DNA from: Malacoraja senta
Taxonomy: Eukaryota
Assembly (NCBI GenBank): GCA_038087875.1
Contig: JAXLNO010001567.1
Location: 1 to 64,000, forward strand
Reading direction: 5' to 3'
Length of the DNA stretch: 64,000 nucleotides
Each line of letters starts with the position of its first letter. The stretch's first letter is position 1. Of this stretch, positions 76 to 64,000 are shown one piece after another. The notes beneath the pieces are model-generated. The model was not told the DNA's origin, ran no database searches, and worked only from the letters and a program-made list of their open reading frames with translations. The position numbers were made by a program, and so were the translations under genes.

Positions 76-2280
76 TCCTCCGTCTACGCCGCATATGCTC
101 CCAGGATGAGGCGTTCCACACCAGGGCATCTGAAGTGTCCTCATTCTTCAGGGAACGGGGGTTCCCCTCCTCCACCATAGATGAGGCTCGCACCAGGGTC
201 TCTGCCATACCCCGCAACACTGCTCTCTCTCCCCATCCCCCCACTCACAACAAGGGCAAAGTCCCCCTAGTCCTCACCTTTCACCCCACCAGCCGTCACA
301 TACAACAAGTGATCCTCCGTCAGTTTCGCCACCTCCAACGTGACCCCACCACTCGCCACATCTTCCCGTGTGATTTAAGATACAAACTTAAAATCACACG
401 GTATTGGGGGTTCAGTATTGATGTGGATAGAGAACTGGCTGGCAAACAGGAAGCAAAGAGTAGGAGTAAACGGGTCCTTTTCACAATGGCAGGCAGTGAC
501 TAGTGGGGTACCGCAAGGCTCAGTGCTGGGACCCCAGCTATTTACAATTTATATTAATGATCTGGACGAGGGAATTGAAAGCAACATCTCCAAGTTTGCG
601 GATGACACTAAGCTGGGGGGCAGTGTTAGCTGTGAGGAGGATGCTAGGAGACTGCAAGGTGACTTGGATAGGCTGGGTGAGTGGGCAAATGTTTGGCAGA
701 TGCAGTATAATGTGGATAAATGTGAGGTTATCCACTTTGGTGGCAAGAACGGGAAGGCAGACTATTATCTAAATGGTGGCCGATTAGGAAATGGGGAGAT
801 GCAGCGAGACCTGGGTGTCATGGTACACCAGTCATTGAAAGTAGGCATGCAGGTGCAGCAGGCAGTGAAGAAAGCGAATGGTATGTTGGCCTTCATAGCA
901 AGAGGATTTGAGTATAGGAGCAGGGAGGTTCTACTGCAGTTGTACAGGGTCTTGGTGAGACCACACCTGGAGTATTGCGTACAGTTTTGGTCTCCAAATC
1001 TGAGGAAGGACATTATAGCCATAGAGGGAGTGCAGAGAAGGTTCACCAGACTGATTCCTGGGATGTCAGGACTTTCATATGAAGAAAGACTGGATAGACT
1101 TGGCTTATACTCGCTAGAATTTAGGAGATTGAGAGGGAATCTTATAGAAACGTACAAAATTCTTATGGGGTTGGACAGGCTAGATGCAGGAAGATTGTTC
1201 CCGATGTTGGGGAAGTCCAGGACAAGGGGTCACAGCTTAAGGATAAGGGGGAAATCCTTTAAGACCGAGATGAGGAAAAACTTTTTCACACAGAGAGTGG
1301 TGAATCTCTGGAACTCTCTGCCACAGAGGGTAGTTGAGGCCAGGTCATTGGCTATATTTAAGAGGGAGTTAGATGTGGCCCTTGTGGCTAAGGGGATCAG
1401 GGGGTATGGAGAGAAGGCCGGTACGGGATACTGAGTTGGATGATCAGCCATGATCATATTGAATGGCGGTGCAGGCTCGAAGGGCCGAATGGCCTACTCC
1501 TGCACCTATTTTCTATGTATCTATGTATCTCCCCCCATGTCTGCCTTCCGCAAAGACCGCTCCCTCCGTAACTCCCTTGTCAATTCTTCCCTTCCCCTCC
1601 CGTACCACCCCCTCCCCGGGTACTTTCCCTTGCAACCGCAAGAGATGCAACACTTGTCCCTTCACCTCCCCCCTCGACTCCATCCAAGGACCCAAGCAGT
1701 CGTTCCAGGTGCGACAGAGGTTCACCTGCATCTCCTCCAACCTCATCTATTGCATCCGCTGCTCTAGATGCCAGCTGATCTACATCGGTGAGACCAAGCA
1801 GAGGCTTGGCGATCGTTTCGACGAACACCTCCGGTAGGTCCGCAATAACCAACTTGACCTCCCGGTGGCTCAGCACTTCAACTCCCCCTCCCATTCCGTA
1901 TCTGACCTCTCTGTCCTGGGTCTCCTCCATGGCCACAGCGAGCAACACCGTAAATTGGAGGAAATGCACCTCATATTCCGCTTGGGTAGTCTACATCCTG
2001 GTAGCTTGAACATTGAATTCTCCCAACTCTGCTAGCCCTTGCTGTCCCCTCCCCTCCATCAGCCCTCTGGTTGTCTCCTCCCCTCCCCCAGCCCTCGGGC
2101 TCCTCCTCCGCCTTTTTTCCTTTTTTCCTTTCTTCTCCCCACCCCCTTTCAGTCTGAAGAAGGGTTTCGGCCCGAAACGTTGCCTATTTCCTTCGCTCCA
2201 CAGATGCTGCTGCACCCGCTGAGTTTCTCCAGCATTTTTGTGTACCTTCGATTTTCCAGCATCTGCAGTTCCTTCTTTAA
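76..2280 (+). mobile_element. Penelope-like element fragment (RT end, GIY-YIG endonuclease, pseudo-LTR), split by a CR1 insertion at 368-1526
   Basis: ORF 1463-1837 contains the GIY-YIG motif NLIYCIRCSRCQLIYIGET. The sequence on each side of the CR1 (cacatcttccc / atctccccccatgtctgcc) joins to match the uninterrupted copy near 12.3 kb. Confidence 0.9.
368..1526 (+). mobile_element. 5'-truncated CR1-type LINE with an open RT C-terminal ORF (418-1434)
   Basis: Motifs GVPQGSVLGP, FADDTK and RPHLEYCVQFW are present, and the 3' UTR ends in short tandem repeats (ttctatgtatctatgt). Confidence 0.93.
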
Positions 2281-7160: not shown

Positions 7161-7529
7161 TTAATTTCTAAGAACGTTATGGGCTTTTGACTGTCCTCGA
7201 TCACAGCTTTTGTGTTAAGTCAATGGAAAAGCAATAGGGAACAAGATACTAATTTACGAGTATGAAAATGGCCATAACTTTTTTAATACTGAAGATATGA
7301 AAGTGAATTAGGTGTCAAATTAAACTTCTTTTATGCTTTATCTGATGGGATAAATTGCAGACTTGATTTTTAAAATCTCAAAATTTTGTAACATTGCTAC
7401 ATACTCCAGCAAATGGTTTATGAATAATAGAAGTGACTTACTGTACCAGTTAAAAATCATTGTGAAAAACTTAATTCCCTCCAAATTTCATTCCCTTCTG
7501 TTGTGCAGCAAGTAAGAATTTCATTGTCC

Positions 7530-8310
7530 TATCTGGGACATATGACAATAAAACACTATCTAACTGGAGTCAAGTTGGGAAAAGGGGAAGTACAACGGGA
7601 TCTGGGGGTCCTTGTACATCAGTCTATGAAAGTAAGCATGCAGGTACAGCAGGCAGTGAAGAGAGCGAATGGCATGTTGGCCTTCATAACAAGAGGAATC
7701 AAATATAGGAGCAAAGAGGTCGTTCTGCAGTTGTACAGAGCCCCAGTGAGACCACACCTGGAGTATTGTGTGCAGTTTTGGTCCCCTAATTTGAGGAAGG
7801 ACATTCTTGCTATCGAGGGAGTGCAGCGTAGGTTTACAAAGTTAATTCTCGGGATGGCGGGACTGTCATATGCTGAGAGAATGGAGCAGCTGGGCTTGTA
7901 CACTCTGGAGTTTAGAAGGATGAGAGGGGATCTCATTGAAACATATAAGATTGTTAAGGGCTTGGACACGCTAGAGGCAGGAAACATGTTCCCGATGTTG
8001 GGGGAGTCCAGAACCAGGTGCCACAGTTTAAGAATAAGGAGTAAGCCATTTAGAACGGAGACGAGGAAACACTTTTTATCAGAGAGAGTGGTGAGTCTGT
8101 GGAATTCTCTGCCTCAGAGGGCGGTGGAGGCAGGTTCTCTGGATGTTTTCAAGAGAGAGCTAGATAGGGCTCTTAAAAATAGCGGAGTCAGGCGATATGG
8201 GGAGAAGGCAGGAACGGGGTACTGATTGGGGACGATCAGCCATGATCACATTGAATGGTGGTGCTGGCTCGAAGGGCCGAACGGCCTACTCCTGCACCTA
8301 TTGTCTATTG
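7530..8310 (+). mobile_element. CR1-type LINE 3' fragment
   Basis: ORF 7503-8225 is homologous to ORF 418-1434 and has the same 3' UTR. Further CR1 fragments lie at about 18600-18960(-), 30940-31790, 34180-35400, 37560-38100, 41460-41950, 43430-43850, 60990-61450 and 63640-64000. Confidence 0.9.
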
Positions 8311-11604: not shown

Positions 11605-14260
11605 CACAAAAATGCTGGAGAAACTCAGCGGGTGCAACAGCATCTATGGAGCGAAGGAAATAGGTAACGTTTCGGGCCGAAACCCTTCTTCAGACTGATA
11701 GGGGGTGGGGAGAAGAAAGGAAAAAAGGAAAAGGAGGAGGAGGAGCCCGAGGGCTGGGGGAGAGGCGGAGACAACCAGATGGCTGATGAAGGGGAGGGGA
11801 CAGCCAGGGCTAGCAGAATTGGGAGAATTCAACGTTCAGGCCACCAGGATGTAGACTGCCCAAGCGGAATATGAGGTGCATTTCCTCCAATTTACGGTGT
11901 TGCTCGCTGTGGCCATGGAGGAGACCCAGGACAGAGAGGTCAGATACGGAATGGGAGGGGGAGTTGAAGTGCTGAGCCACCGGGAGTTCAGGTTGGTTAT
12001 TGCGGACCGACCGGAGGTGTTCTGCGAAACGATCGCCAAGCCTCCGCTTGGTCTCACCGATGTAGATCAGCTGGCATCTAGAGCAGCGAATGCAATAGAT
12101 GAGGTTGGAGGAGATGCAGGTGAACCTCTGTCGCACCTGGAACGACTGCTTGGGTCCTGGAATGGAGTGGAGGGGGGAAGTGAAGGGACAAGTGTTGCAT
12201 CTCTTGCGGTTGCAAGGGAAAGTACCAGGGGAGGGGGTGGTATGGGAGGGAAGGGAAGAATTGACAAGGGAGTTACGGAGGGAGCGGTCTTTGCGGAAGG
12301 CAGACATAGGGGGAGATGGGAAGATGTGGCGAGTGGTGGGGTCACGTTGGAGGTGGCGGAACTGACGGAGGATCACTTGTTGTATGTGACGGCTGGTGGG
12401 GTGAAAGGTGAGGACTAGGGGGACTCTGCCTTTGTTGTGAGTGGGGGGATGGGGAGAGAGAGCAGTGTTGCGGGGTATGGCAGAGACCCTGGTGCGAGCC
12501 TCATCTATGGTGGAGGAGGGGAACCCCCGTTCCCTGAAGAATGAGGACATTTCAGATGCCCTGGTGTGGAACGCCTCATCCTGGGAGCAGATGAGGCGTA
12601 GACGGAGGAATTGGGAGTGGGGGATGGAGTCCTTACAGGAAGCAGGGTGGGAAGAAGTGTAGTCCAGATAGCCATGGGAGTCGGTAGGTTTGTAGTGGAT
12701 GTCGGTAAGGAGTCTATCACCTGCGATGGAGATAGTGAGGTCAAGGAATGGTAGGGAAGTGTCGGAAATGGTCCAGGTGTATTTGAGTGCCGGATGGAAG
12801 TTGGTGGTGAAGCGGATGAAGTCAGTCAGTTGTGTGTGGGTGCAGGATGTGGCACCAAAACAATCATCGATGTAGCGGAGGTAGAGGTCGGGGATGGGGC
12901 CCTGGTACGCATTGAACAGGGATTGTTCTACGTACCCGACAAAGAGGCAGGCGTAGCTGGGGCCCATGCGTGTGCCCATAGCTACGCCTTGTATTTGGAG
13001 GAAATGGGAGGAGTCAAATGAAAAGTTATTAAGTGTAAGTACCAGCTCCGCTAGGCGGAGGAGGGTGTCAGTGGCCGGGTATAGATTGCTTCTACGGTCG
13101 AGGAAAAACGGAGGGCTTTGAGACCATCCTGGTGGGGGATGGAGGTGTACAGTGACTGGACGTCCATGGTGAAGATGAGGGGGTGAGGGCCTAGAGAGTG
13201 GAATGCGCGGAGATGACGGAGAGTGTCTGAGGTGTCTTGAACATAGGTAGGGAGGGATTTAACCAAGGGGGAGAGGATGGAGTCGAGGTAGGTGGAGATG
13301 AGTTCGGTGGGGCACGGACAGGCAGAGACAATGGGTCTACCGGGACAGTCAGGTTTGTGGATTTTGGGGAGAAGGTAAAAGCGGGCTGTGCGGGGCTGGG
13401 GAACGATGAGGTTGGAGGCTCGTTCGGGCAGGGCGTGGGAGTGGATGAAGTTGGTGATGGTGCTGGAGATGGTGGCCTGGTGCTCGTCAGTGGGGTCATG
13501 GTCCAGGGGTAAGTAGGAAGAGGTGTCCGAGAGTTGGCGCGTGGCCTCAGCTTTTTAGAGGTCGACGTGCCAGACTACCACGGCACCTCCCTTGTCGGCG
13601 GGTTTGATAACCCAATCTAGGTTGTTGCGGAGTGAGTCGATGGCAGTGCGTTCAAGGGGGGAGAGATTGGAGTGAGACAGGGGAGTGGAGAAGTTGAGGC
13701 GGCTGATGTCACGGCGGCAGTTTTTAATAAAGAGTTCTAAAGCCGGAAGGCTGCGAGGGGGGTTCCATGAGGATGGGGTGCGTTGGAGATGGGAAAAGGG
13801 GTCATCAGTGGGGAGCGAGGACTGCTTCCCATGGAAGTGAGCTGTGAGGCGGAGGCGACGGTAGAAGCGTTCCAAGTCATGGAGGGCACGGAACTCATTG
13901 AGATGGGGACGGAGGGGGACAAAGGTAAGACCTCTGCTGAGGACAGACCGTTCGATGTCGGAGAGGGGGAGGTCGGGGGGGGATGGTGAACACCCGGCAG
14001 GGATGGGGGTTGGGGCCGGAGGAAGGCAGGTGGGTGTAATGGGGACGAGGCGATGTGTGGTGGGGGGGTGGTGGGGTGGTGTGGGGGGGGGGGGTCCTAT
14101 TCACTGCCTGTTGCCGCACATGGCAGCAGACACCATCCCCACCAGTTCCCCCTTCATTCTTGGTGGCGCCCCCATCCCCACAGTACCTCATTTGTTCTCG
14201 TCCCCCTCAATGGGACAGCCTCCCTGTGCTGAATGCCCTACGTCTACAATGTTCTGAGTA
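11605..14260 (-). mobile_element. Long Penelope-like element (RT + GIY-YIG), frameshifted
   Basis: ORF 11810-12979 contains MGTRMGPSYACLF, YLRYIDD and GIY-YIG. Upstream ORF pieces contain VIKPADKGGAVVVW and IFTMDVQSLYTSIPH. A pseudo-LTR lies at the 3' end (about 11605-11700). Confidence 0.95.
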
Positions 14261-20110: not shown

Positions 20111-20391
20111 TCCTGTTTGTTTTACACGAGTTAAAATCAGTTTAAACCAATATCTGTAGTTCCTTCTTCCACAAAGGAAACGGGGCATTGTGCAAATCAA
20201 AGCAGAAATTCCAGTCTGGATTGTACTGAAACAGTGGAGATTAAACCCTTTTAACGTCCGTCCGCATGAACCATGAATCAGACTGAATGTGTATTGCGCG
20301 CTTTTTTAAACTCAGTCGCCTCCGGTCAAGATTGAGATAAAGCCAAGACGCTTTTAGCCAGTAGCGAATAAAATGAGAATCATTAACTTGC

Positions 20392-20443
20392 CTGCTTGAG
20401 CCCCTTGTACGCGGAAGAAACTCAACAAGATGAACAGAATCAT
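20392..20443 (-). CDS. Signal-peptide (leader) exon of a second MHC class I-like paralogue, MILFILLSFFRVQGAQA
   Basis: It has the same 52-nt CDS length and phase as the leader at 61817-61868 and a similar sequence (M[IL]LF[IT]LL[SN]...V). It ends in CAG|GCAAGT, a consensus GC-type donor. An in-frame upstream ATG lies at 20464. Confidence 0.65.
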
Positions 20444-20517
20444 TTCACGCACAACGTCTCGCATCAACAGCAGCAACTGAGCCAAACTTCACCAACATCA
20501 AAGCAGGATCTCATCAT

Positions 20518-25959: not shown

Positions 25960-26990
25960 TAGGTCCTTGGATGGAGTCAAGGGGGGAGGTAAAGCGCCAA
26001 GTGTAGCATTTCCTGCGGTTGCAAGGGAAAGTACCAGGGGAGGGAGTGGTTTGGGTGGGAAGGGACGAATTGACCAGGGAGTTACAGAGGGAGCGGTCTC
26101 TGCAGAAAGCTGAAAGGGGAGAAGATGAGAAGATGTGGCCAGTGATGGGATCCCGTTGGAGGTGGCGAATATGTCGGAGGATTATCTGTTGTATGTGACG
26201 GCTGGTAGGGTGTAATGTGAGGACAAGGGGGACTTGTCACGAGTGGGGGGATGGGGAGTGAGAGCGGAGCAACGAGATATAGAAGAGACCCTGCTGAGAG
26301 CCTCATCTATAGTCGAAGAGAAGAAGCCCCGTTCCCTAACCTTCCCCTCCCCTGGCACTTTCCCTTGCAACTGCAGGAAATGCTACACTTGTCGCTTTAT
26401 CTCCCCCCTTGACTCCATCCAAGGATCTAAGCAGTCTTTCCAGGTGAGGCAGAGGTTCACCTGCCCCTCCTCCAAACTCATCTATTGCATCCGCTGCTCT
26501 AGGTGTCAACTGCTCTACATCGGTGAGACCAAGCGCAGGCTTGGCGATCGCTTCGCCCAACACCTCCGCTCAGTCCGCATTAACCAACCTGATCTCCCGG
26601 TGGCTCAGCACTTCAACTCCCCCTCCCATTCAGAATCCGACCTTTCTCTCCTGGGTCTCCTCCACGGCCAGAGTAAGACCCTCTGCAAATTGGAGGGGCA
26701 GCATATCATTTTTCGCTTGGGTAGTTTACACCCCAGCGGTATGAACATTGACCTCCATTTTCAGGTAGTCTTTGCTTTCTCCCTCCTTCCCCTCCCCTTC
26801 GAAGCTCTCCCACAGCCTACTATCTCCACCTCTTCCTTTCTTCTTCCCGCCCCACACCCCCATATCAGTCTGAAGAAGGGTCTCGACCCAAAACATCACC
26901 TATTCCTTTGCTCCATAGATGCTGCCTCACCGCTGAGTGTCTCCAGCATTTTTGTCTACCTTGGATTTTTCCAGCATCTGCAGTTCTTTC
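25960..26990. mobile_element. Penelope-like fragments joined in inverted orientation
   Basis: 25960-26335 is in minus orientation and 26340-26990 is in plus orientation (GIY-YIG in ORF 26234-27040). The arms are complementary. Confidence 0.8.
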
Positions 26991-27752
26991 TTAAACATGT
27001 ACTTGTTCTTTGTACTTTCCTGAGTGTATGGTGGGGGTAATGTGGGGTGAGCTTTACCCAAAATCAAATACGAGGTAAGAGTTGTTTAATTGTCATATGT
27101 ATCAACAATAGAACAACAAAATTCTGACTTGCTGCAGCTTCACCTGCATGTAACTGCAATAACACAGTGATAATATAAAACAACCAATAAAACAATAAAT
27201 TAATAACTGTAATACTGGACTATCATAATAGTGTAAAAAACTAAATTCATATTACATTCAAAGACATTCCGTAGATGATCATAGATGCTGAAGTTAGTTT
27301 TGTGTGGTGTTGAAGAGCCTGATGTTTGCTGAGAAGAGGCTATTCTTAAATCTGGTTGTCACGGTTTTCAGGCTGCTGTATCTTTCCCTATATCTATACT
27401 TAGGGGCGGCAGGGTGGCGCAGCGGTAGTTGCTGCCTTATAGCACCAGACACCAGGGTTCGATCCTGACTATGGGTGCGGTCTGCACGGTGTTTGTATGT
27501 TGGGTGAACGCATGGGTTTTCTCCGGGTGCTCCAGTTTCCTCCCACACTCCAAAGACGTACAGGTTTGTAGGTTAATTGGTTTGTAAATTGTAATTTGTA
27601 CCTAGTGTGTGTAGGATAGTGCCAATGTAAAGGGATCATTGGTCTTCGCAAACTTGGTAGGCCGAAAGGCCTGTTTCCATGCTGTATCTCTAAACTAAAC
27701 TAAACTAATTCTGCCCTGAGAGTGTGTGCATGGACAACGCAGACACAGCTTA

Positions 27753-45164: not shown

Positions 45165-46144
45165 CTGGAAAATAAATTTTCTTCGTAACTATTTTAAAGA
45201 GGGACCCAACATGGGAGGACTGCCGAGAACAAAGATAACAAAGAGGGTCCCGGGGTTGGGGGGGGAGGGGGCGCGGATAACACAGGTGAACCCAACATGG
45301 AGGGGCTGCCGAGAACAAAGAGGGACCATTGGGGACTGTAATGATTACTTTGTAACTGTGTCGACACCCTATACATGGTGACTTGTGTATGTATACCTTG
45401 TGTATGTTATGCAAAGCAAAGAATTTCACTGTGACATGTCACATGTGATAATAAAGTATCAATCAATCAAATAGGCGACCTTTTATTCCAAAATGTGGCG
45501 CAATGTATGACTTTGGAATCACAGGGTAACTGCAGTGAAGACAGCATTTGAAAAATTAATGGCTGAATGTAAAGTCATCAGTCAGCATTGATACAATAAA
45601 GAGCATAGAACAGTACAGCACAAGAACAGGCCCTTTGACCCACAATGTCTGTGCCGAACATGATGCCAAGACCAATTGTTATCTGCTTGCACATAATCCA
45701 TATCCATCCATTCCCTGCATATACATGTGCCTATCTAAAAGTCTCTTAAATGCCACTATCATATCTGCTTCCACCACCACCTCCAGCAGCACATTCCAGT
45801 CACTCACCACCCTTGGCGTAAAACACTTGTCCTGCACATCTTTTTTTAACTTTGCCACTCATTGTAAAGCAATACCTGCTCTTATTTGATATTTCCTTCC
45901 TGGGTAAAAAGTCTGATGGTCTACCCTATCTCTACTCCTCCCAGTTTGATATATTACTGTCAGGTCTCCCCTCAATCCCCGACATTCCAGAGAAAACAAT
46001 CCAACTGTCCAGTCTGTCCAACTTCTCCCTGTGGCTAATACCCCACTAATCCAGGCATCATTCCGGTAGACCTCCTCTGCATCCCAAAGGAAGCTGATTG
46101 TGCTTCATGGTCCTCTCCTGGTCTCTGCTGTTGTCAGCTGGTAC

Positions 46145-46278
46145 CTGTTCATTGAAAGGTTTTCTCTTTTTCCTCTTCTTCCAGCAACCAATTCCAAGGA
46201 TGATCCCCAGGAGAATGAGAGGAACAATTACAGCTCCAGTCACGATCCTAATCTTCATATCTTCTTTCACTGCCCTCT
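46145..46278 (-). CDS. Class I-like TM exon, (E)RAVKEDMKIRIVTGAVIVPLILLGIILGIGCWKKRKKRKPFNEQ
   Basis: A hydrophobic span is followed by a basic stop-transfer cluster. The phase-1 acceptor caacag|AG is compatible with alpha3. Confidence 0.85.
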
Positions 46279-46291
46279 CTGTTGGCATATA

Positions 46292-48269
46292 CAGTGGCTT
46301 GCAAAAGTATTCATACCCCTTGAACTTTTCCACATTTTGTCACGTTACAACCACAAGCGTAAATGTATTTTATTGGGATTTTATGTGATAGACCAACATA
46401 AAGTGGCACATAATTGTGAAGTGGAAGGAAAATTATACATGGTTTTCAAATTTTTTTACAAATAAAAAACTGAAAAGTGTCGCGTGCGAAAATATTCAGC
46501 CCCCTTTACTCTGATACCCCTAAATAAAATCCAGTGCAACCAATTGCCTTCAGAAGTCACCTTATTAGTAAATAGAGTCCACTTGTGTGTAATCTCGGGA
46601 CGACAGATGGCGCAATGGGCTAAGTGTTCGGCTGGCAACCGGAAGGTAGCCGGTTCGAATCCCGCTTGGAGTGCATACTGTCGTTGTGTCCTTGGGCAAG
46701 ACACTTCACCCACCTTTGCCTGCGTGTGAATGTGTGTGAATGTGTGTGAGTGATTGGTGGTGGTCGGAGGGGCGGTAGGCGCAGATTAGCAGCCACGCTT
46801 CCGTCAGTCTGCCCCAGGGCAGCTGTGGCTACAGAAGTAGCTCACCACCACCGAGTGTGACTGAGGAGTGAATGAATAATGCGATGTAAAGCGCCGAGTA
46901 TTAGAAAGGCGCTATATAAATACCATCCATTATTATTATTATTATTATTAATCTAATCTCAGTATAAATACAGCTGTTCTGTGAAGGCCTCAGAGGTTTG
47001 TTAGAGAACATTAGTGAACAAACAACATCATGAAGCCAAAGGAACACACCAGACAGGTCAGGGATAAAGTTGTGGAGAAGTTTAAAACAGGGTAAGGTTA
47101 TAAATAAATATCCCAAGCTTTGAACATCTCACGGAGCACTGTTCAATCCATCATCCGAAAATGGAAAGAGTATGGCACAACTGCAAACCTACCAAGACAT
47201 GGCCGTCCACCTAAACTGACAGGCCGGGCAAGGAGAGCATTGATCAGAGAAGCAGCCAAGAGGCCCATGGTAACTCTGGAGGAGCTGCAGAGATCCACAG
47301 CTCAGGTGGGAGAATCTGTCCACAGGAAAACTATTAGTCGTGCACTCCACAAATCGGGCCTTTATGGAAGAGTGGCAAGAAGAAAGCCATTGTTGAAAAA
47401 AGCCCATAAGAAGTCCCGTTTGCAGTTTGCCACAAGCCATGTGGGGGACACAGCAAACATGTGGAGGAAGGTGCTCTGGTCAGATGAGACCAAAATTGAA
47501 GTTTTTGGCCTAAATGCAAAACGCTATGTGTGGCGGAAACCTAACACTGCACATCACCCTGAACACACCATCCCCACTGTGAAACATGGTGGTGGCAGCA
47601 TTATGCTGTGGGGATGCTTTTCTTCAGCAGGGACAGGGAAGCTGGTCAGAGTTGATGGGGGAAGATGGATGGAGCCAAATACAGGGCAATCTTGGAAGAA
47701 AACCTGTTAGAGTCTGCAAAAGACTTGAGACCGGGGCGGAAGTTCACCTTCCAGCAGGACAACGACCCTAAACATACAGCCAGAGCTACAATGGAATGGT
47801 TTAGATCAAAGCGTATTCATGTGTTAGAATGGCCCAGTCAAAGTCCAGACCTAAATCAAATTGAGAATCTCTGGCAAGACTTGAAAATTGCTGTTCACAG
47901 ATGCTCTCCATCCAATCTGACTGAGCTTGAGCTATTTTGCAAAGAAGAATGGGCAAAAATTTCAGTCTCTAGATGTGCAAAGCTGGTAGAGATATACCCC
48001 AAAAGACTTGCAGCTGTAATTGCAGCAAAAGGTGGTTCTACAAAGTATTGACTCAGGGGGGCTGAATACTTTTGCACGCGACACTTTTCAGTTTTTTATT
48101 TGTAACAAAATTTGAAAACCATGTATCATTTTCCTTCCACTTCACAATTATGCACCACTTTGTGTTGGTCTATCACATAAAATCCCAATAAAATACATTT
48201 ACGTTTGTGGTTGTAACGTGACAAAATGTGGAAAAGTTCAAGGGGTATGAAAACTTTTGCAAGCCACTG
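46292..48269 (+). mobile_element. Tc1 (DD34E) transposon with IR/DR-type TIRs; transposase inactivated
   Basis: TIRs of about 215 bp begin CAGTGGCTTGCAAAAG, with TA TSDs at 46290-46291 and 48270-48271. The transposase runs 47030-48051 with [14 protein letters not shown] and SPDLNQIE (34-aa D-E spacing). It has two TAA stops in the first 26 codons and a frameshift in the G-run near 47655-47660. Confidence 0.97.
46595..46950 (+). mobile_element. tRNA-derived SINE (not HE1-type) inserted inside the Tc1
   Basis: A-box tggcgcaatgg, B-box ggttcgaatccc, tail gcgctatataaat...(att)n, and short duplication (t)aatct on both sides. Confidence 0.85.
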
Positions 48270-54123: not shown

Positions 54124-54396
54124 CCTGTGGAACATTGACTCCCTGCAGCAGAGTTGCATGTTCGATGTAACAGGAGAATTTTGCCACATCTTCTCTATTC
54201 AGTTGAATTGTATTCTTCAGCTGGTAAGTCCCATCCCAATTGGGCAACAGATCACTGGATTCAGACTCATGGACCCCCTCACCATCTCTCAGCCACGTTA
54301 CATCGATGGCCCGTGGCTAGAAGCCTGTGACAAGGCAGGAGAGTATCAGTGATTGCGACCCATCACGTTTAATCCCAATAAACACCTCAGGGGTTT
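54124..54396 (-). CDS. Class I-like alpha3 (Ig C1) exon with an in-frame stop
   Basis: Hand translation: (E)TPEVFIGIKRDGSQSLILSCLVTGF*PRAIDVTWLRDGEGVHESESSDLLPNWDGTYQLKNTIQLNREDVAKFSCYIEHATLLQGVNVPQ. Junctions are ttgcag|AA and G|gtaagt; the exon is 273 nt, phase 1-1. Confidence 0.95.
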
Positions 54397-55600
54397 CTGC
54401 AAGTGTAAGAAGAGTCAGAATCAGTGAAGACATGAACAAAAGCCTTCAATTGTAAGATCACTGCAACTCACCACTTTCCCAATCAGAGTTTTTTCTCTGG
54501 CTGAACTAAGTTTTCAGCCTAGACCCAAAATGCTGGAATAACTCAGCAGGTCAGGCAGCATTCTGGAGAGAAGGAATGCCCAGAGATGCTATCTGACCCA
54601 CTGAGTTACACCAACATCTTCTATCTTCAGTGTAAACCATCATCTGCAGTTCTATCTTGCACAAAGTTTACAGCCTTTTCTCTTTTCATTTTGCATTTCT
54701 GGCAAAACAACAAAACATTTAGCTTTAATATCACTGACATGCTCCTTATCTTAGCTCCAGACTTTAACTGACAGCACAGATGAAAGGGGAATGCAGGCCC
54801 AATGGAGGAGTATAACTCACCATTGGGATTGATACTGTAGACATGATTGCTTCTACCTGTTCATGAATCTCTGCTGAATAATAACACTAAATATTCCAAG
54901 AGGGAATGGGAGGAAGAAGTTCTTCAAATAGAGAACTGTTGGAAATTGAATGTCACCATCCCAAGGAGTAATAGAGGCAAATAGAGAATCTGATTGGGTT
55001 TCTGATCAGTTCAGCAACAGACCCTTCAGGCCACAAGGTCGGTGCTAAACATAAGACCAAGATACATATTCCTCCATTTCCTGAATATCTATATGACTGT
55101 GGATAAAGGACACTGGTACAATATTTATCTTTCACTTGCACTTCCTACCCACTGGCTCCATCTAAGAGGCACGTTGCCAGACAATTTACTGATACCCACG
55201 TTGTAGAACAGGGTGGCGAAGCAGTGGAGCTACTGCCTTACAGCGCCAGAGACCTGGGTTTGTTACTAACTACGGGTGCTTGTCTTTACAGAGTTTGTAC
55301 GTTCTCCCTGTGACCTGCGTGGGTTTTATCCGAGATCTTCGGTTTCCCCTCACACTCGAAAGACGTACAAATTTGTAGGTTAATTGGATTGGTATAAATG
55401 CAAATTGTCCCTAGTGTGTGTAGGATAGTGTTAGTGTGCGGGCATGGCTGCTCGGTGCGGTCTCGGTGGGTTTCCGCGCTGTATCTCTAAACTAAACTAA
55501 ATAATTACTCAAGTGACAGCCTGAAGTGCATGATATTTCCCACCTGATCTATCCAGAGGATATCCTCTGGCCCATCAGTCAGAGTGCCTACGTCGTGTAC

Positions 55601-55876
55601 CTCTCCTCTGTAGTGCTTCTTGTCCACACTCCAGATATATCCGCAGCCACTTCACACAGTCCTTCTCCAGGAGATCTTTAAAATACTTGTTCATGAAGGT
55701 GTTGACGTTCCACCGATCTGCTAGCATCTGGAAATCTGGACGTAGTGCAATCCAGCGCATTCTGTCCTTGTCAAAAGCACAGGCATCCTCCCCATCATAA
55801 CCCAGTCTGAAAAACCCATCAGTGGAATTGTCACTGTCCACTTCACAGCCGCAGAAACCCTGCACAAAGCAAACAG
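55601..55876 (-). CDS. Class I-like alpha2 exon
   Basis: (T)VCFVQGFCGCEVDSD...GYDGED...W...DRWN...CVKWLRIYL. Junctions are ccccag|CT and G|gtacac; the exon is 276 nt. Confidence 0.95.
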
Positions 55877-57620
55877 CTGGGGCTGAGGTAGGGGTGGAGG
55901 ATTTGTGTTGGGGAGAGTGGATGGAAGGGAGAGGCAATTTACAAATCAGTTCTCAGCATGGTACAAACAGGCATAACAGAACACAACATGGAGCTGTACA
56001 GCACAGGAGCAGGTTTAGCTCAGAGATACAGCGCGGAAACAGGCCCTTCGGCCCACCGAGTCCGCACCGACCAGTGGTCCCCGCATATTAACACTATCCT
56101 ACACAGACTACTTTTCTTTTCCAGCTTTCTCCACTCTACCCCATCACTCTAAATGGTCCTGGTCTCATATGTTTTCTGTCCATTTGTCCACAGCATGCTG
56201 CCTGACTCGTTGAGTTCCTCCTGTTTGTTTTAAATTCAGATTGGCAGCATCTGCAGTTTGCTGTGACTCCATCTTAGCACAATGGATGATCAATGTGGAT
56301 TCAGTGAGCAGAAGGGCCGGTTTCCATGATGTGTGACTCAATAACCCATGGTCTATATACTGAGGGCATGGACTAACCTCAAGTGTTATGGGGGGGAGCT
56401 TTACTGTTGTGGATGTAACACTAAAGGAGTTCTGCTGTGTCAGAAGGGTAGAACTCAGATTCTGCACTGTCGTACATAAAGAACAGAGGAAGAAGTGCAT
56501 TGTCAGATGGGCAATGCTACAGAGCCAACAGGTCAGTCTGAAGGTTAAGGCAATGCAGATGGGAAGTACATCAAGGCTGTTGCACTGTGTGGGATTGCTA
56601 CACCCTCTGAGGATTGTTGCCAATATTGAGGGGATGCTGGATTAACACAATATTATTACTGAGGGAATACCTCATAGTCACCATCAACCAGCTTAAATCA
56701 AGATCCCATCTCTAGATGATCAGGCTATAAATAAACTAATGGTTTCTCCCTCATTCCAGCCCAACAAAACAGATGATCCAATCCATCCACTTATTACTGG
56801 TGTTGAATATCAAATGCTTAACCCATAAAGAGACTATCACCAGCCAACTGTTATGACTGTGTGTTCAGCAGTTAGGACACATTAAATATAGACGATGGGC
56901 CGTGTCTCTATCAAAATGTGATGGAGTAAATGTCTGAAACAGCATCAATGGTGCTGAAGTGAAAAAGGTTGAGAGTTTCTGGTTCCCCTACTGCCTCAGG
57001 AGACTAAGGAAATGCGGCATCTCCAATGACTCTTACAAACTTCTACAAATGTGCCATAGAAAGCATACTGACAGGTTGCATCACAACTTAGTTTGGAAAG
57101 AGTTCTGCCCAAGACCGCTGGAAATGGCAGAGAGGTGGAGATGTAGCACAGTCGATCACACAAACATGATTCCCCACCAGTGAATCCATCTGTATTTCAA
57201 CTGGTTCAGGAAAGCAGACAACATAATCAAAGATTTGTCCCGTTCTGGTCACTCCTTCTTCCTGCAGAAGGTACGTAAGCATTAAAGCGTGCACCACCAG
57301 ACTCAGTAACTGTTTCCTCCCCTATGTTATCAGGTTTCTGAACAGTCCTCCCTTATGCTAGGGTTCACCTCAACCCCATTGTAGACACTGGACTTTGTCT
57401 CTGGCACTGGTACATTACAATGCTGAGAACTACATTCTGCACTCTTTGCTCTACCTATTGTACGAGTTTGGTTTGATTGTATTTATGAATAGTTTTCTTT
57501 GATGTGATTGACTAACGCAAAAAAAGTGTATCAGAGAATCATGTGACAGCAACAAAACTATAACAAAATCCATCTGTGTCATCACTGGGTCTCTACCCCA
57601 GGTCCGCTCACGACACTTAC

Positions 57621-57881
57621 TCGAGATACCATGTTGCTGTTGGTAGACTATCTCAGCATTTCCTCTGACAATCCCATGAAAACCTGCAACTGTGATGGCC
57701 ATTGAATCCCAGTGATCCTGCGGGAAAGACTGGGCCATCCATCGCTGTCTGGGAACAGCCCGCTCTAGTGTGCTGTCAAAATATGCTATCTGGACGTCAT
57801 CCAGCATTGCTACCATACTGTACTCAGGCAGCTCATTCAATCCATGGTTCAACAGGTAGTAAGATGCAAGATGGTGTAAAT
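57621..57881 (-). CDS. Class I-like alpha1 exon
   Basis: (D)LHHLASYYLLNHGLNELPEYSMVAMLDDVQIAYFDSTLERAVPRQRWMAQSFPQDHWDS...HGIS. Junctions are cattgcag|AT and A|gtaagt; the exon is 261 nt. Confidence 0.95.
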
Positions 57882-61816: not shown

Positions 61817-61868
61817 CAGAGGAGACAGTGGCTACACCGTAAGTGTTCAGTAAGGTAAAAAGAAGCAT
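61817..61868 (-). CDS. Class I-like leader exon, MLLFTLLNTYGVATVSS
   Basis: The ATG is at 61868, it encodes a hydrophobic 17-aa peptide, and the donor is G|gtaagc. Phase 1 joins alpha1 to give D. Confidence 0.85.
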
Positions 61869-61890: not shown

Positions 61891-62070
61891 TATTTAACCA
61901 GCAGAGTAAATGCAGCAACAGTAACATAATCTCTTGTACGTTTTTAACAGAACTCTGGTGTGAAGGTAATTATTGGTCCATGTATACACAAACCTGATAA
62001 CCAGATCCAATGGGAATGAGACCACTTGTTCTCGTCACTAATTACCAGTGAATACAGTTTACGGATTGGG
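61891..62070 (-). promoter_or_regulatory. MHC-type SXY-like promoter with extra CCAAT boxes and a TATA-like element
   Basis: On the minus strand: CCCAAT (62065-62070), X1-like CACTGGTAATTAG, TGACG (62033-62037), a 21-bp gap, ATTGG (62007-62011), CCAAT (61972-61976) and TTAAATA (61891-61897). Confidence 0.65.
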
Positions 62071-64000
62071 TTTTATGGTAGGGATTGTATTGGTGTTTTA
62101 AGGACAACAATTACAAAATCATATTTCACATAGCATCTTACAGCCGAATAGATGTTTCTCAAAGTATAATGATTTTACAATTCAGAATGCAGTCAATTCC
62201 ACAAACTGCAGTGTTAGATAAACCAGATAGTCTACTTTACTGTGTAGGAAGGAACTGCAGATGCTTGTTTTACTGTAGGCAGATGCAAAAAGCTGGAGTA
62301 ACTCAGCGGGTCAGGCAGCATTTCTGGGGAAAAGGAATAGGTGACATTTCGGGAAGGGTCTCAACACAAATCGTCACCTTTTCCTTTTTCCCAGAAGTGC
62401 TGCCTGACCTGCTGAGTTACTCCATCTTTTTATAAGCATAGAAAATAGGTGCATGAGGAGGCCCTTCGGCCCTTCGAGCCAGCACTGCCATTCATGGTGA
62501 TCATGGCTGATCGTCCCCAATCAATGCCTGCCTTCTCCCCGTATCCCTTGATTCCACCAGCCTCTAGAGCTCTATCTAACATTTTTGTGTCTGTCTTTAG
62601 TCCACTTTACTGTTATTGCTTAAGTAATAAAAATTGGACAATGCATGTGTAATAATTTCCCAGCCCTTATTTGAGGTAATACCATGCGTCTTTTTTTTCA
62701 GCTGGGAGGAGAGACATGAGCTCAGTTTAAAGTTGTGTCTAGGTGTAAATGTGCAGCTCAGTCTCAACATCAGTGCAGAAATCTCTCATTGAGCCTTCTG
62801 TTAATACATGGCCCTTTACACCATGTCCCACTCACCTGAAAACTATGCTCTCCATTACTTTATATTTACACCCTGTGGAAAGGATTCTGACTCTCTATCC
62901 CATCTATGCCTCTCATAGTTTTATATACTTTTATCAACCTCCAGCATTCTAGCGATTACAATCTAAGTCTGTCCAACCTCTCCTTCCAGCTAATATCTAA
63001 TCTGTGCATCATTCTGGCAAACCACCTCTGCACAAATTCCATGCTTCCAAATTCATCCTGCATTGGGGCAACCAGAAATGCCGATAATATTCTAAAAGTG
63101 GCCTATCTGAAGTTCTATTCTCCGACCAGTCTGACTGTCCCCCTGATTAAAAATTATCTATGTATGCTTCGTTCACACCTACTCCTGGCTAATAATGATC
63201 TATTCTACATTTTCCTTGAACTACATCTCATTTGATGTCATTCTTTCATACCTTACACTTCCTTATCTCCATGTCTCCCTTTCCTCTTCAGCCTGAAGGG
63301 ACTCAACCAGAAATGTCAGCCATTCCTTCTATCCAGAGATGCTGCCTGTCCCACTGAGTTACTCCAGCATTTTGTGTCTATCTTTGAAGTTCCATAAAGC
63401 AGCATATGACTTCCTGACTCTTATACTCAATGCTATGAATAGTGTCTTTACCACTCTGGCTTTCAATTGATTGAAGGCGGAAAGGAGCCAAAGAATTATA
63501 TAGCAAAAAATCTCTGTGGTGGGACTGGAACAGAATGTTTTTTTTTAAAGCAAAAAAATCAAGGATATTGTTCAATAAAAAAGTAAAATATTTCTTTTCC
63601 CGGTATGGCGGGACTAACATATGATGAAAGAATGGACTGACTGGGCTTATATTCACTGGAATTTAGGATGAGATGGGATCTTATAGACGCATATAAAATT
63701 CTTAAGGGATTGGACAGTTAGATGCAGGAAAAATGTTCCCGATATTGGGGGGAGTCCAGAACCAGGAGTCACAGTTTACGACTAAAGGGTAGGCCATTTA
63801 GGAATGAGATGAAGAAAAACGCTTTCATCCAGATAGTTGTGAATCTGTGGAATTCTCTGCCACAGAAGGCAGTGGAGGCCAATTCACTCGATGTCTTCAA
63901 GAGAGAGTTAGATCTTAGGGCTACAGAATCAAGGGATATGGGGAGAAAGCAGGAACAGGGTATTGATTCTGGATGCTCAGCCATGATCATATTGAATGAC

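Follow-up and report, generated by a model that had tools for sequence, protein, structure and literature searches.

The two class I exons examined here are best explained as the second and third of the five exons that make up a non-classical MHC class I gene from an old elasmobranch lineage, the sister of UGA, whose product would bind a hydrophobic ligand and of which the copy at hand is disabled or a null allele. We consider this reading, taken as a whole, fairly probable. What makes it interesting is the lineage rather than this broken copy. Among animals with an MHC, sharks and rays are the most ancient, and UFA and UGA have recently been brought forward to argue that lipids have been presented for as long as peptides. 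One more ancient lineage beside UGA, present in one or a few copies, would widen this picture of lipid presentation; the groove of the lineage is even more apolar and nearly frozen in sequence since the divergence of sharks and rays, and the lineage provides a well-defined subject for structural studies and for elution of ligands.

Gene structure

In the window, i.e., the whole 64-kb stretch of DNA that was analyzed, the gene comprises five exons on the minus strand (61868-46058), which together give 360 spliced codons with one defect. The leader exon (61817..61868, minus strand) consists of 17 codons and one base, starting with the ATG at 61868 and ending at the donor gtaagc in phase 1; the leader peptide is identical to that of Leucoraja erinacea, the DNA is nearly so, and the join with alpha1 is in frame. 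The alpha1 exon (57621..57881, minus strand, 261 nt) and the alpha2 exon (55601..55876, minus strand, 276 nt) are both in phase 1 with AG/GT borders, and the outer limits given in the initial annotation (55601-57881) agree exactly with the borders of these two exons. The Pfam MHC_I profile matched alpha1 with E 1.7e-5 and alpha2 with E 2.9e-16. It should be noted that an alternative in-frame acceptor of alpha2 is located at 55882, 6 nt upstream; RefSeq models use the 55882-type acceptor in rays and the shorter form in sharks. A frameshift at the alpha1/alpha2 junction was rejected, because the acceptor is ccccag at 55877 and not the later tgcag.

The alpha3 exon, a C1-set Ig domain (54124..54396, minus strand, 273 nt, phase 1), contains the single defect, and the part that follows the stop codon was recognized by the Pfam C1-set profile with E 6.9e-9. 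The last exon (46058..46278, minus strand) was located by tblastn with a protein of the lineage and its borders were read from the DNA; it encodes a connecting peptide, a transmembrane helix, a basic stop-transfer segment and a cytoplasmic tail of approximately 40 residues that ends with TGA. Both alpha2 cysteines (the disulfide pair C101-C164) and both alpha3 cysteines are present. The locus combines MHC_I domains, a C1-set domain, a transmembrane segment and phase-1 exons of one domain each, as in MHC class I heavy chains, with alpha3 interrupted here by a TAG. Besides one leader exon of a UGA gene, no further class I exons were found in the 64-kb window.

Upstream of the leader (61975-62075, minus strand), TGACG (X2-like) and ATTGG (Y-like) boxes are present approximately 22 bp apart, together with two CCAAT boxes; read by eye, this arrangement resembles the MHC S-X-Y promoter layout. 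A search of the window against Rfam produced no match. The L. erinacea RefSeq model XP_055486430 runs 14 codons beyond a weak alpha2 donor, gtacac (12984-13025 of the L. erinacea stretch). The equivalent read-through in the window (55560-55600) would meet a TGA, and a similar insertion is found in the Stegostoma model. The 14-codon extension is probably a model artefact at the weak donor.

Orthology and position among elasmobranch class I lineages

A HMMER search with alpha1 led to XP_055486430, an L. erinacea protein with 94% identity; the protein identity was 93% over alpha1-alpha2 and 91% over alpha1-alpha3. Through introns and flanks, from upstream of the leader to past the last exon, the window is colinear with JAMYXN010000384.1, a contig of L. 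erinacea, with a nucleotide identity of 87-91%; this colinearity across introns and flanks identifies the locus as the ortholog of that encoding XP_055486430. Orthologs with 54-77% identity were found in approximately 14 sharks and rays, and the next relatives are at 33-42%. RefSeq has automatically annotated the lineage in approximately 15 elasmobranchs, and most genomes carry a single model of it. In Heptranchias, numerous nearly identical models are spread over several contigs. A second copy is present in L. erinacea (JAMYXN010000412.1, 10226-14651); it is partial and degenerate, lacks alpha1 and has damaged conserved residues, and its annotated model, XP_055486496, includes read-through into introns.

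In a maximum likelihood tree of 51 sequences, the lineage formed a clade with support of 100/100 and a branching order that follows the species tree, with a batoid subclade at 96/96. Its sister, at 94/92, was a clade comprising proteins from Pristiophorus and Amblyraja with matches to PDB entry 9ch4, the title of which reads "shark nonclassical MHC class I, UGA" (entry 8gm8 is titled UFA). UGA and this lineage are separate clades, each with 100% support and each found in sharks and in rays. Membership in the UGA lineage was rejected on the basis of this sister relationship and of an identity of 37-42%. The placement of three Callorhinchus genes near the two clades was unresolved in the tree; their identity to the lineage is 32-37%, and no close Callorhinchus ortholog of the lineage was found.

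Other known lineages were considered as well. Membership in UFA was rejected, since the Cetorhinus protein that matches 8gm8 at 52% sits on a separate branch. The two lineages are alike in that UFA is an MHC-linked, low-copy, anchor-less elasmobranch class Ib lineage described as CD1-like; they differ in sequence (approximately 30% identity, 115 bits), in that UFA forms a separate long-branch clade, and at the C-terminus, which is short, hydrophobic and without a tail in the UFA relative but comprises a transmembrane segment and a cytoplasmic tail in this lineage. A large shark-only class I clade (51 rows) was likewise separate from the lineage. This clade, in which neither alpha2-disulfide cysteine is present, we take to be UEA, which is reportedly a shark-only multigene family (a 2021 J Immunol abstract). 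Under this assumed equivalence, membership in UEA was rejected because the lineage occurs in rays and has one model in most genomes. UDA is said, in a 2020 J Immunol abstract, to retain eight of nine invariant peptide-terminus residues and to occur in chimaeras; a lineage with two of eight such residues and no close Callorhinchus ortholog does not agree with this description and is probably distinct from UDA. UBA goes back to UAA, and UCA is known only from squaliform sharks. Judged by these descriptions, UBA and UCA would not fit a lineage common to sharks and rays.

The suggestion that the lineage may be undescribed was therefore upheld in part. It lies outside UAA, UFA, UGA and the shark-only clade, and no published name for it was found in the literature; on the other hand, it is present in RefSeq annotation and its sawfish ortholog has been tagged MHC-Ib in a map of the MHC that has been published.

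Residues of the groove

We mapped the HLA numbering by means of the landmarks C101, C164, W133, W147, W60 and D29-D30, in agreement with the HMMER ranges against PDB chains; the position numbers themselves we take to be those of HLA-A2. All of the residues previously reported by eye (Ser7, His59, Met63, Gln84, Ala123, Leu143, Arg146, Trp147, Leu159 and Tyr171) are present. W147 and Y171 are the only two kept out of eight peptide-terminus anchors, the others being replaced by S/F7, H59, Q84, L143, R146 and L159; the claim of a non-classical molecule with lost terminus anchors is thus borne out, and assignment to classical, UAA-type class I was rejected with two of eight residues retained. The N86 sequon is indeed absent, and an N-S-T sequon is located in the alpha2 loop instead (55829..55821); the latter is kept in nearly all orthologs, with N-T-T in Mustelus.

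The proposed hydrophobicity of the groove was measured over 44 HLA groove positions, and conservation was calculated across 13 orthologs. In this copy, 28 of the 44 positions are apolar and two are charged, as the initial annotation would lead one to expect. The number of apolar positions is 28-30 in this lineage, 22-23 in the UGA relatives and 23 in the UFA relative; the corresponding numbers of charged positions are two (Arg146 and Asp163), 4-6 and three. Nearly invariant positions account for 30 of the 44, and conservation decreases from the groove (0.87) to the rest of alpha1-alpha2 (0.81) to alpha3 (0.76). The residues invariant in the lineage include Phe7, His59, Thr66, Gly69, Asn77, Gln84, Gly97, Ala123, Leu143, Arg146, Tyr155, Phe156, Leu159 and Tyr171. 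In addition, an extra cysteine is invariant at the HLA-99 position of the groove floor (55851..55853, minus strand), where a single Gly separates it from the disulfide cysteine that follows (C-G-C motif); batoids have a cysteine also at the position equivalent to 124.

Predicted fold and comparison with UGA, MR1 and CD1

The alpha1-alpha2 domains of L. erinacea, standing in for this copy, were modeled with AlphaFold, and the model (pLDDT 93.6) is a class I platform. Its best structural match was UGA (TM 0.90, Z 25.3, 37% identity), followed by MR1 and by class I molecules of fish and birds, including chicken YF1*7.1. UGA is also the sister clade, the tandem neighbor and the best sequence match (skate members XP_032898133 and XP_055521885; PDB 9CH4 released 2026-03-18), with alpha1 matching 9ch4 at E 1.2e-21. 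The two lineages have in common the AGFHG motif of the alpha1 helix, which is present in this copy, the floor residues Gly97 and Ala123, the alpha2-helix motif Asn-Lys/Arg-Tyr-Phe-Lys ... Leu-Leu-Glu ... Asp-Cys, and approximately 19 of 44 groove positions. In contrast, besides the low overall identity and the more apolar groove reported above, positions 7, 59 and 99 are Phe, His and Cys in this lineage and Tyr, Tyr and Phe in UGA, the N-S-T sequon of the alpha2 loop belongs to this lineage, and the skate UGA tail ends with YQNI, whereas the tail of this lineage carries no such sorting signal.

The automatic RefSeq names suggest another reading, namely that the lineage is the elasmobranch ortholog of MR1. 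Several features point to MR1: alpha2 scores best against MR1 chains in PDB (E of about 1e-16), His59 and the loop lengths match those of MR1, and the conservation is of the monomorphic type. However, in the HMMER alignment with human MR1, the Schiff-base residue Lys43 aligns with Ala; over its full length the protein reaches 207 bits with UGA, compared to about 134 bits for the portion of the best chain that is MR1; and the lineage clusters with UGA in trees, which were built from sequences other than MR1. Orthology with MR1 is, in our estimate, extremely improbable, and we retain the placement as the sister of UGA.

The likeness to CD1 suggested earlier would be one of analogous function, that is, a hydrophobic ligand in an apolar groove. 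Of 55 sequence matches in PDB with E<1e-30, none was a CD1 chain, and CD1 was likewise absent from the top 50 structural matches; the Pfam MHC_I_3 profile remained below its cut-off; and the Tyr-x-x-hydrophobic motif characteristic of endosomal sorting, which most CD1 isoforms carry, was found in the cytoplasmic tail of none of 16 orthologs. Because CD1 did not appear among the top sequence and fold matches and this motif is missing, membership in CD1 was rejected. The modeled fold resembles UGA, MR1 and classical class I more closely than it does CD1.

The putative ligand

According to a review, UFA and UGA bind lipids of the CD1d type (PMC12562908). By analogy, the ligand of this lineage is likely to be conserved, hydrophobic, non-peptide and lipid-like. 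The intact protein would pair with beta2-microglobulin and, on the UGA pattern, would bind one conserved hydrophobic and probably lipid-like ligand, which may be displayed to a monomorphic, conserved receptor as proposed for UGA. Loading would probably take place in the secretory pathway, outside the endosomal route, because the tail has no endosomal sorting motif.

Two other uses of the groove were considered. The lineage might present a narrow set of hydrophobic peptides, in the manner of HLA-E/Qa-1, or acylated peptides, instead of lipids. Apart from UGA, the modeled fold is as close to peptide-binding class I of fish and birds and to MR1 as to anything else; chicken YF1*7.1 structures that contain N-acylated glycine rank among its best matches; and W147, Y171 and Arg146 are kept. 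Nevertheless, six of eight terminus-binding positions are replaced, mostly by residues that do not form hydrogen bonds (F/S7, H59, Q84, L143, L159 and A123), and the sister lineage UGA is described as lipid-binding (PMC12562908), so that we regard presentation of peptides as unlikely. Alternatively, the groove may be empty and the conserved surface may serve to bind a receptor or partner, as in relatives such as HFE and those of the ZAG-like and FcRn type. The strong conservation of both helices fits a fixed protein-protein interface as well, whereas the conserved small floor residues (Gly97, Ala123 and Gly69) together with the apolar, inward-facing residues suggest a cavity and not a collapsed groove, and the same review (PMC12562908) describes the solved UGA structure as that of a molecule that binds ligand. 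We therefore view an empty groove as quite improbable and favor a hydrophobic, lipid-like ligand.

A more speculative extension, in which we place little credence, is that the lineage, with the most apolar groove of the set, is a third, independent hydrophobic-ligand-presenting class I lineage of sharks and rays, in which the cysteine of the floor could tether or sense the ligand, and which is dispensable or null-polymorphic in skates. Lys43 of MR1 would be a loose analogue of such a chemical role of the unpaired cysteine at HLA-99.

The in-frame stop codon and the state of this copy

In the assembled copy, the Tyr codon of the GFYP motif in alpha3 is an in-frame TAG (54317..54319, minus strand); the corresponding codon is TAC in L. 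erinacea and in Pristis pectinata. The TAG is located 193 nt 5' of the last exon junction and precedes both the second Ig cysteine and the transmembrane exon. The TAC > TAG change would stop translation ahead of the end of the Ig domain and of the transmembrane segment, and a membrane protein would thereby be prevented in this copy. Stop codons placed in this way upstream of the last junction lead, by an established rule, to the expectation of nonsense-mediated decay. Judging from the sequence, such decay would be expected for the transcript of this copy. Exon 4 is symmetrical and its skipping would preserve the frame; nothing supports such skipping.

We also compared substitutions in this copy and in L. 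erinacea. The pairwise dN/dS over alpha1-alpha3 was 0.56. With Pristis as the outgroup, the window branch has nine non-synonymous (the stop codon included) and five synonymous substitutions, and the L. erinacea branch has nine and six. A signal of relaxed selection on the window branch was sought in these substitution counts and was not found; the counts of the two branches are alike, and the rates thus give no sign that the gene has been decaying for long. The types of changes on the two branches differ. F7S, F90C, L166R and F2L are radical, found in the window only, and located at sites that are fixed in 10-12 other orthologs, whereas the changes of L. erinacea are conservative or are located at variable sites. 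For example, the Ser7 codon (57864..57862, minus strand) is peculiar to this copy, and Phe is found in 11 of 11 orthologs.

Intron 4 has a length of 7.8 kb, compared to 2.7 kb in L. erinacea, and has gained a Tc1/mariner element and other insertions. The element encodes a frameshifted transposase (47120..48051, plus strand; HTH_Tnp_Tc3_2, 6e-26; DDE_3, 8e-11); it is not present in intron 4 of L. erinacea, and the colinearity with the L. erinacea contig has a gap there.

As read from the assembly, this copy is probably a recently disabled gene or pseudogene, or else a null allele. The contrary reading is that the gene is functional in Malacoraja senta and makes the full membrane protein, the TAG being an assembly error or a rare null allele of one haplotype. 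It agrees with the presence of one defect only in 360 codons, with intact splice sites, leader, transmembrane exon and stop codon, with the pairwise dN/dS and with a window branch that carries no excess of changes. However, the radical changes peculiar to the window at otherwise fixed positions, the insertions gained by intron 4, and the searched protein collection, which contained no protein from this gene, argue against it, and we consider a functional gene somewhat unlikely. If the copy is disabled or null, as we suppose, it indicates that loss of the gene, or a null allele of it, is tolerated; in at least one skate, then, the gene may serve a function that is dispensable or for which there is a backup, perhaps the adjacent UGA gene.

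Genomic neighborhood

The leader exon of a tandem UGA gene was detected at 20390..20464 (minus strand) by tblastn with skate proteins of the UGA lineage (E 1e-9 to 5e-8). It is located 25.6 kb downstream of the gene, on the same strand. Most of its 25 residues are common to skate UGA leaders (62% identity over 34 aligned residues), and it differs from the UGA leaders of L. erinacea and Amblyraja radiata, which points to a third species of skate. The UGA alpha1-alpha3 exons are outside the window, and consequently the first UGA intron is longer than 20 kb. In L. erinacea, the ortholog and a gene of the UGA lineage are on one contig of 127 kb.

In the supplement to PMC10751288, LOC127585976, the ortholog of the sawfish, carries the tag MHC-Ib and is placed between B2M/BRD2 and COL11A2/RXRB, followed by three class I genes; the MHC-Ib tag is its only designation in that supplement, which gives no lineage name. 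The gene is located in an MHC-Ib cluster, directly upstream of UGA.

The window is rich in repeats, and SINE-like copies are found in all introns of the gene. Several fragments of reverse transcriptase, and others that show a weak similarity to GIY-YIG (E 4e-4, which does not reach the Pfam cut-off), are located at 418-1431 (plus strand), 11813-12979 (minus strand), 7503-8225 (plus strand) and 26234-27040 (plus strand), and are possibly remnants of Penelope-type retroelements.
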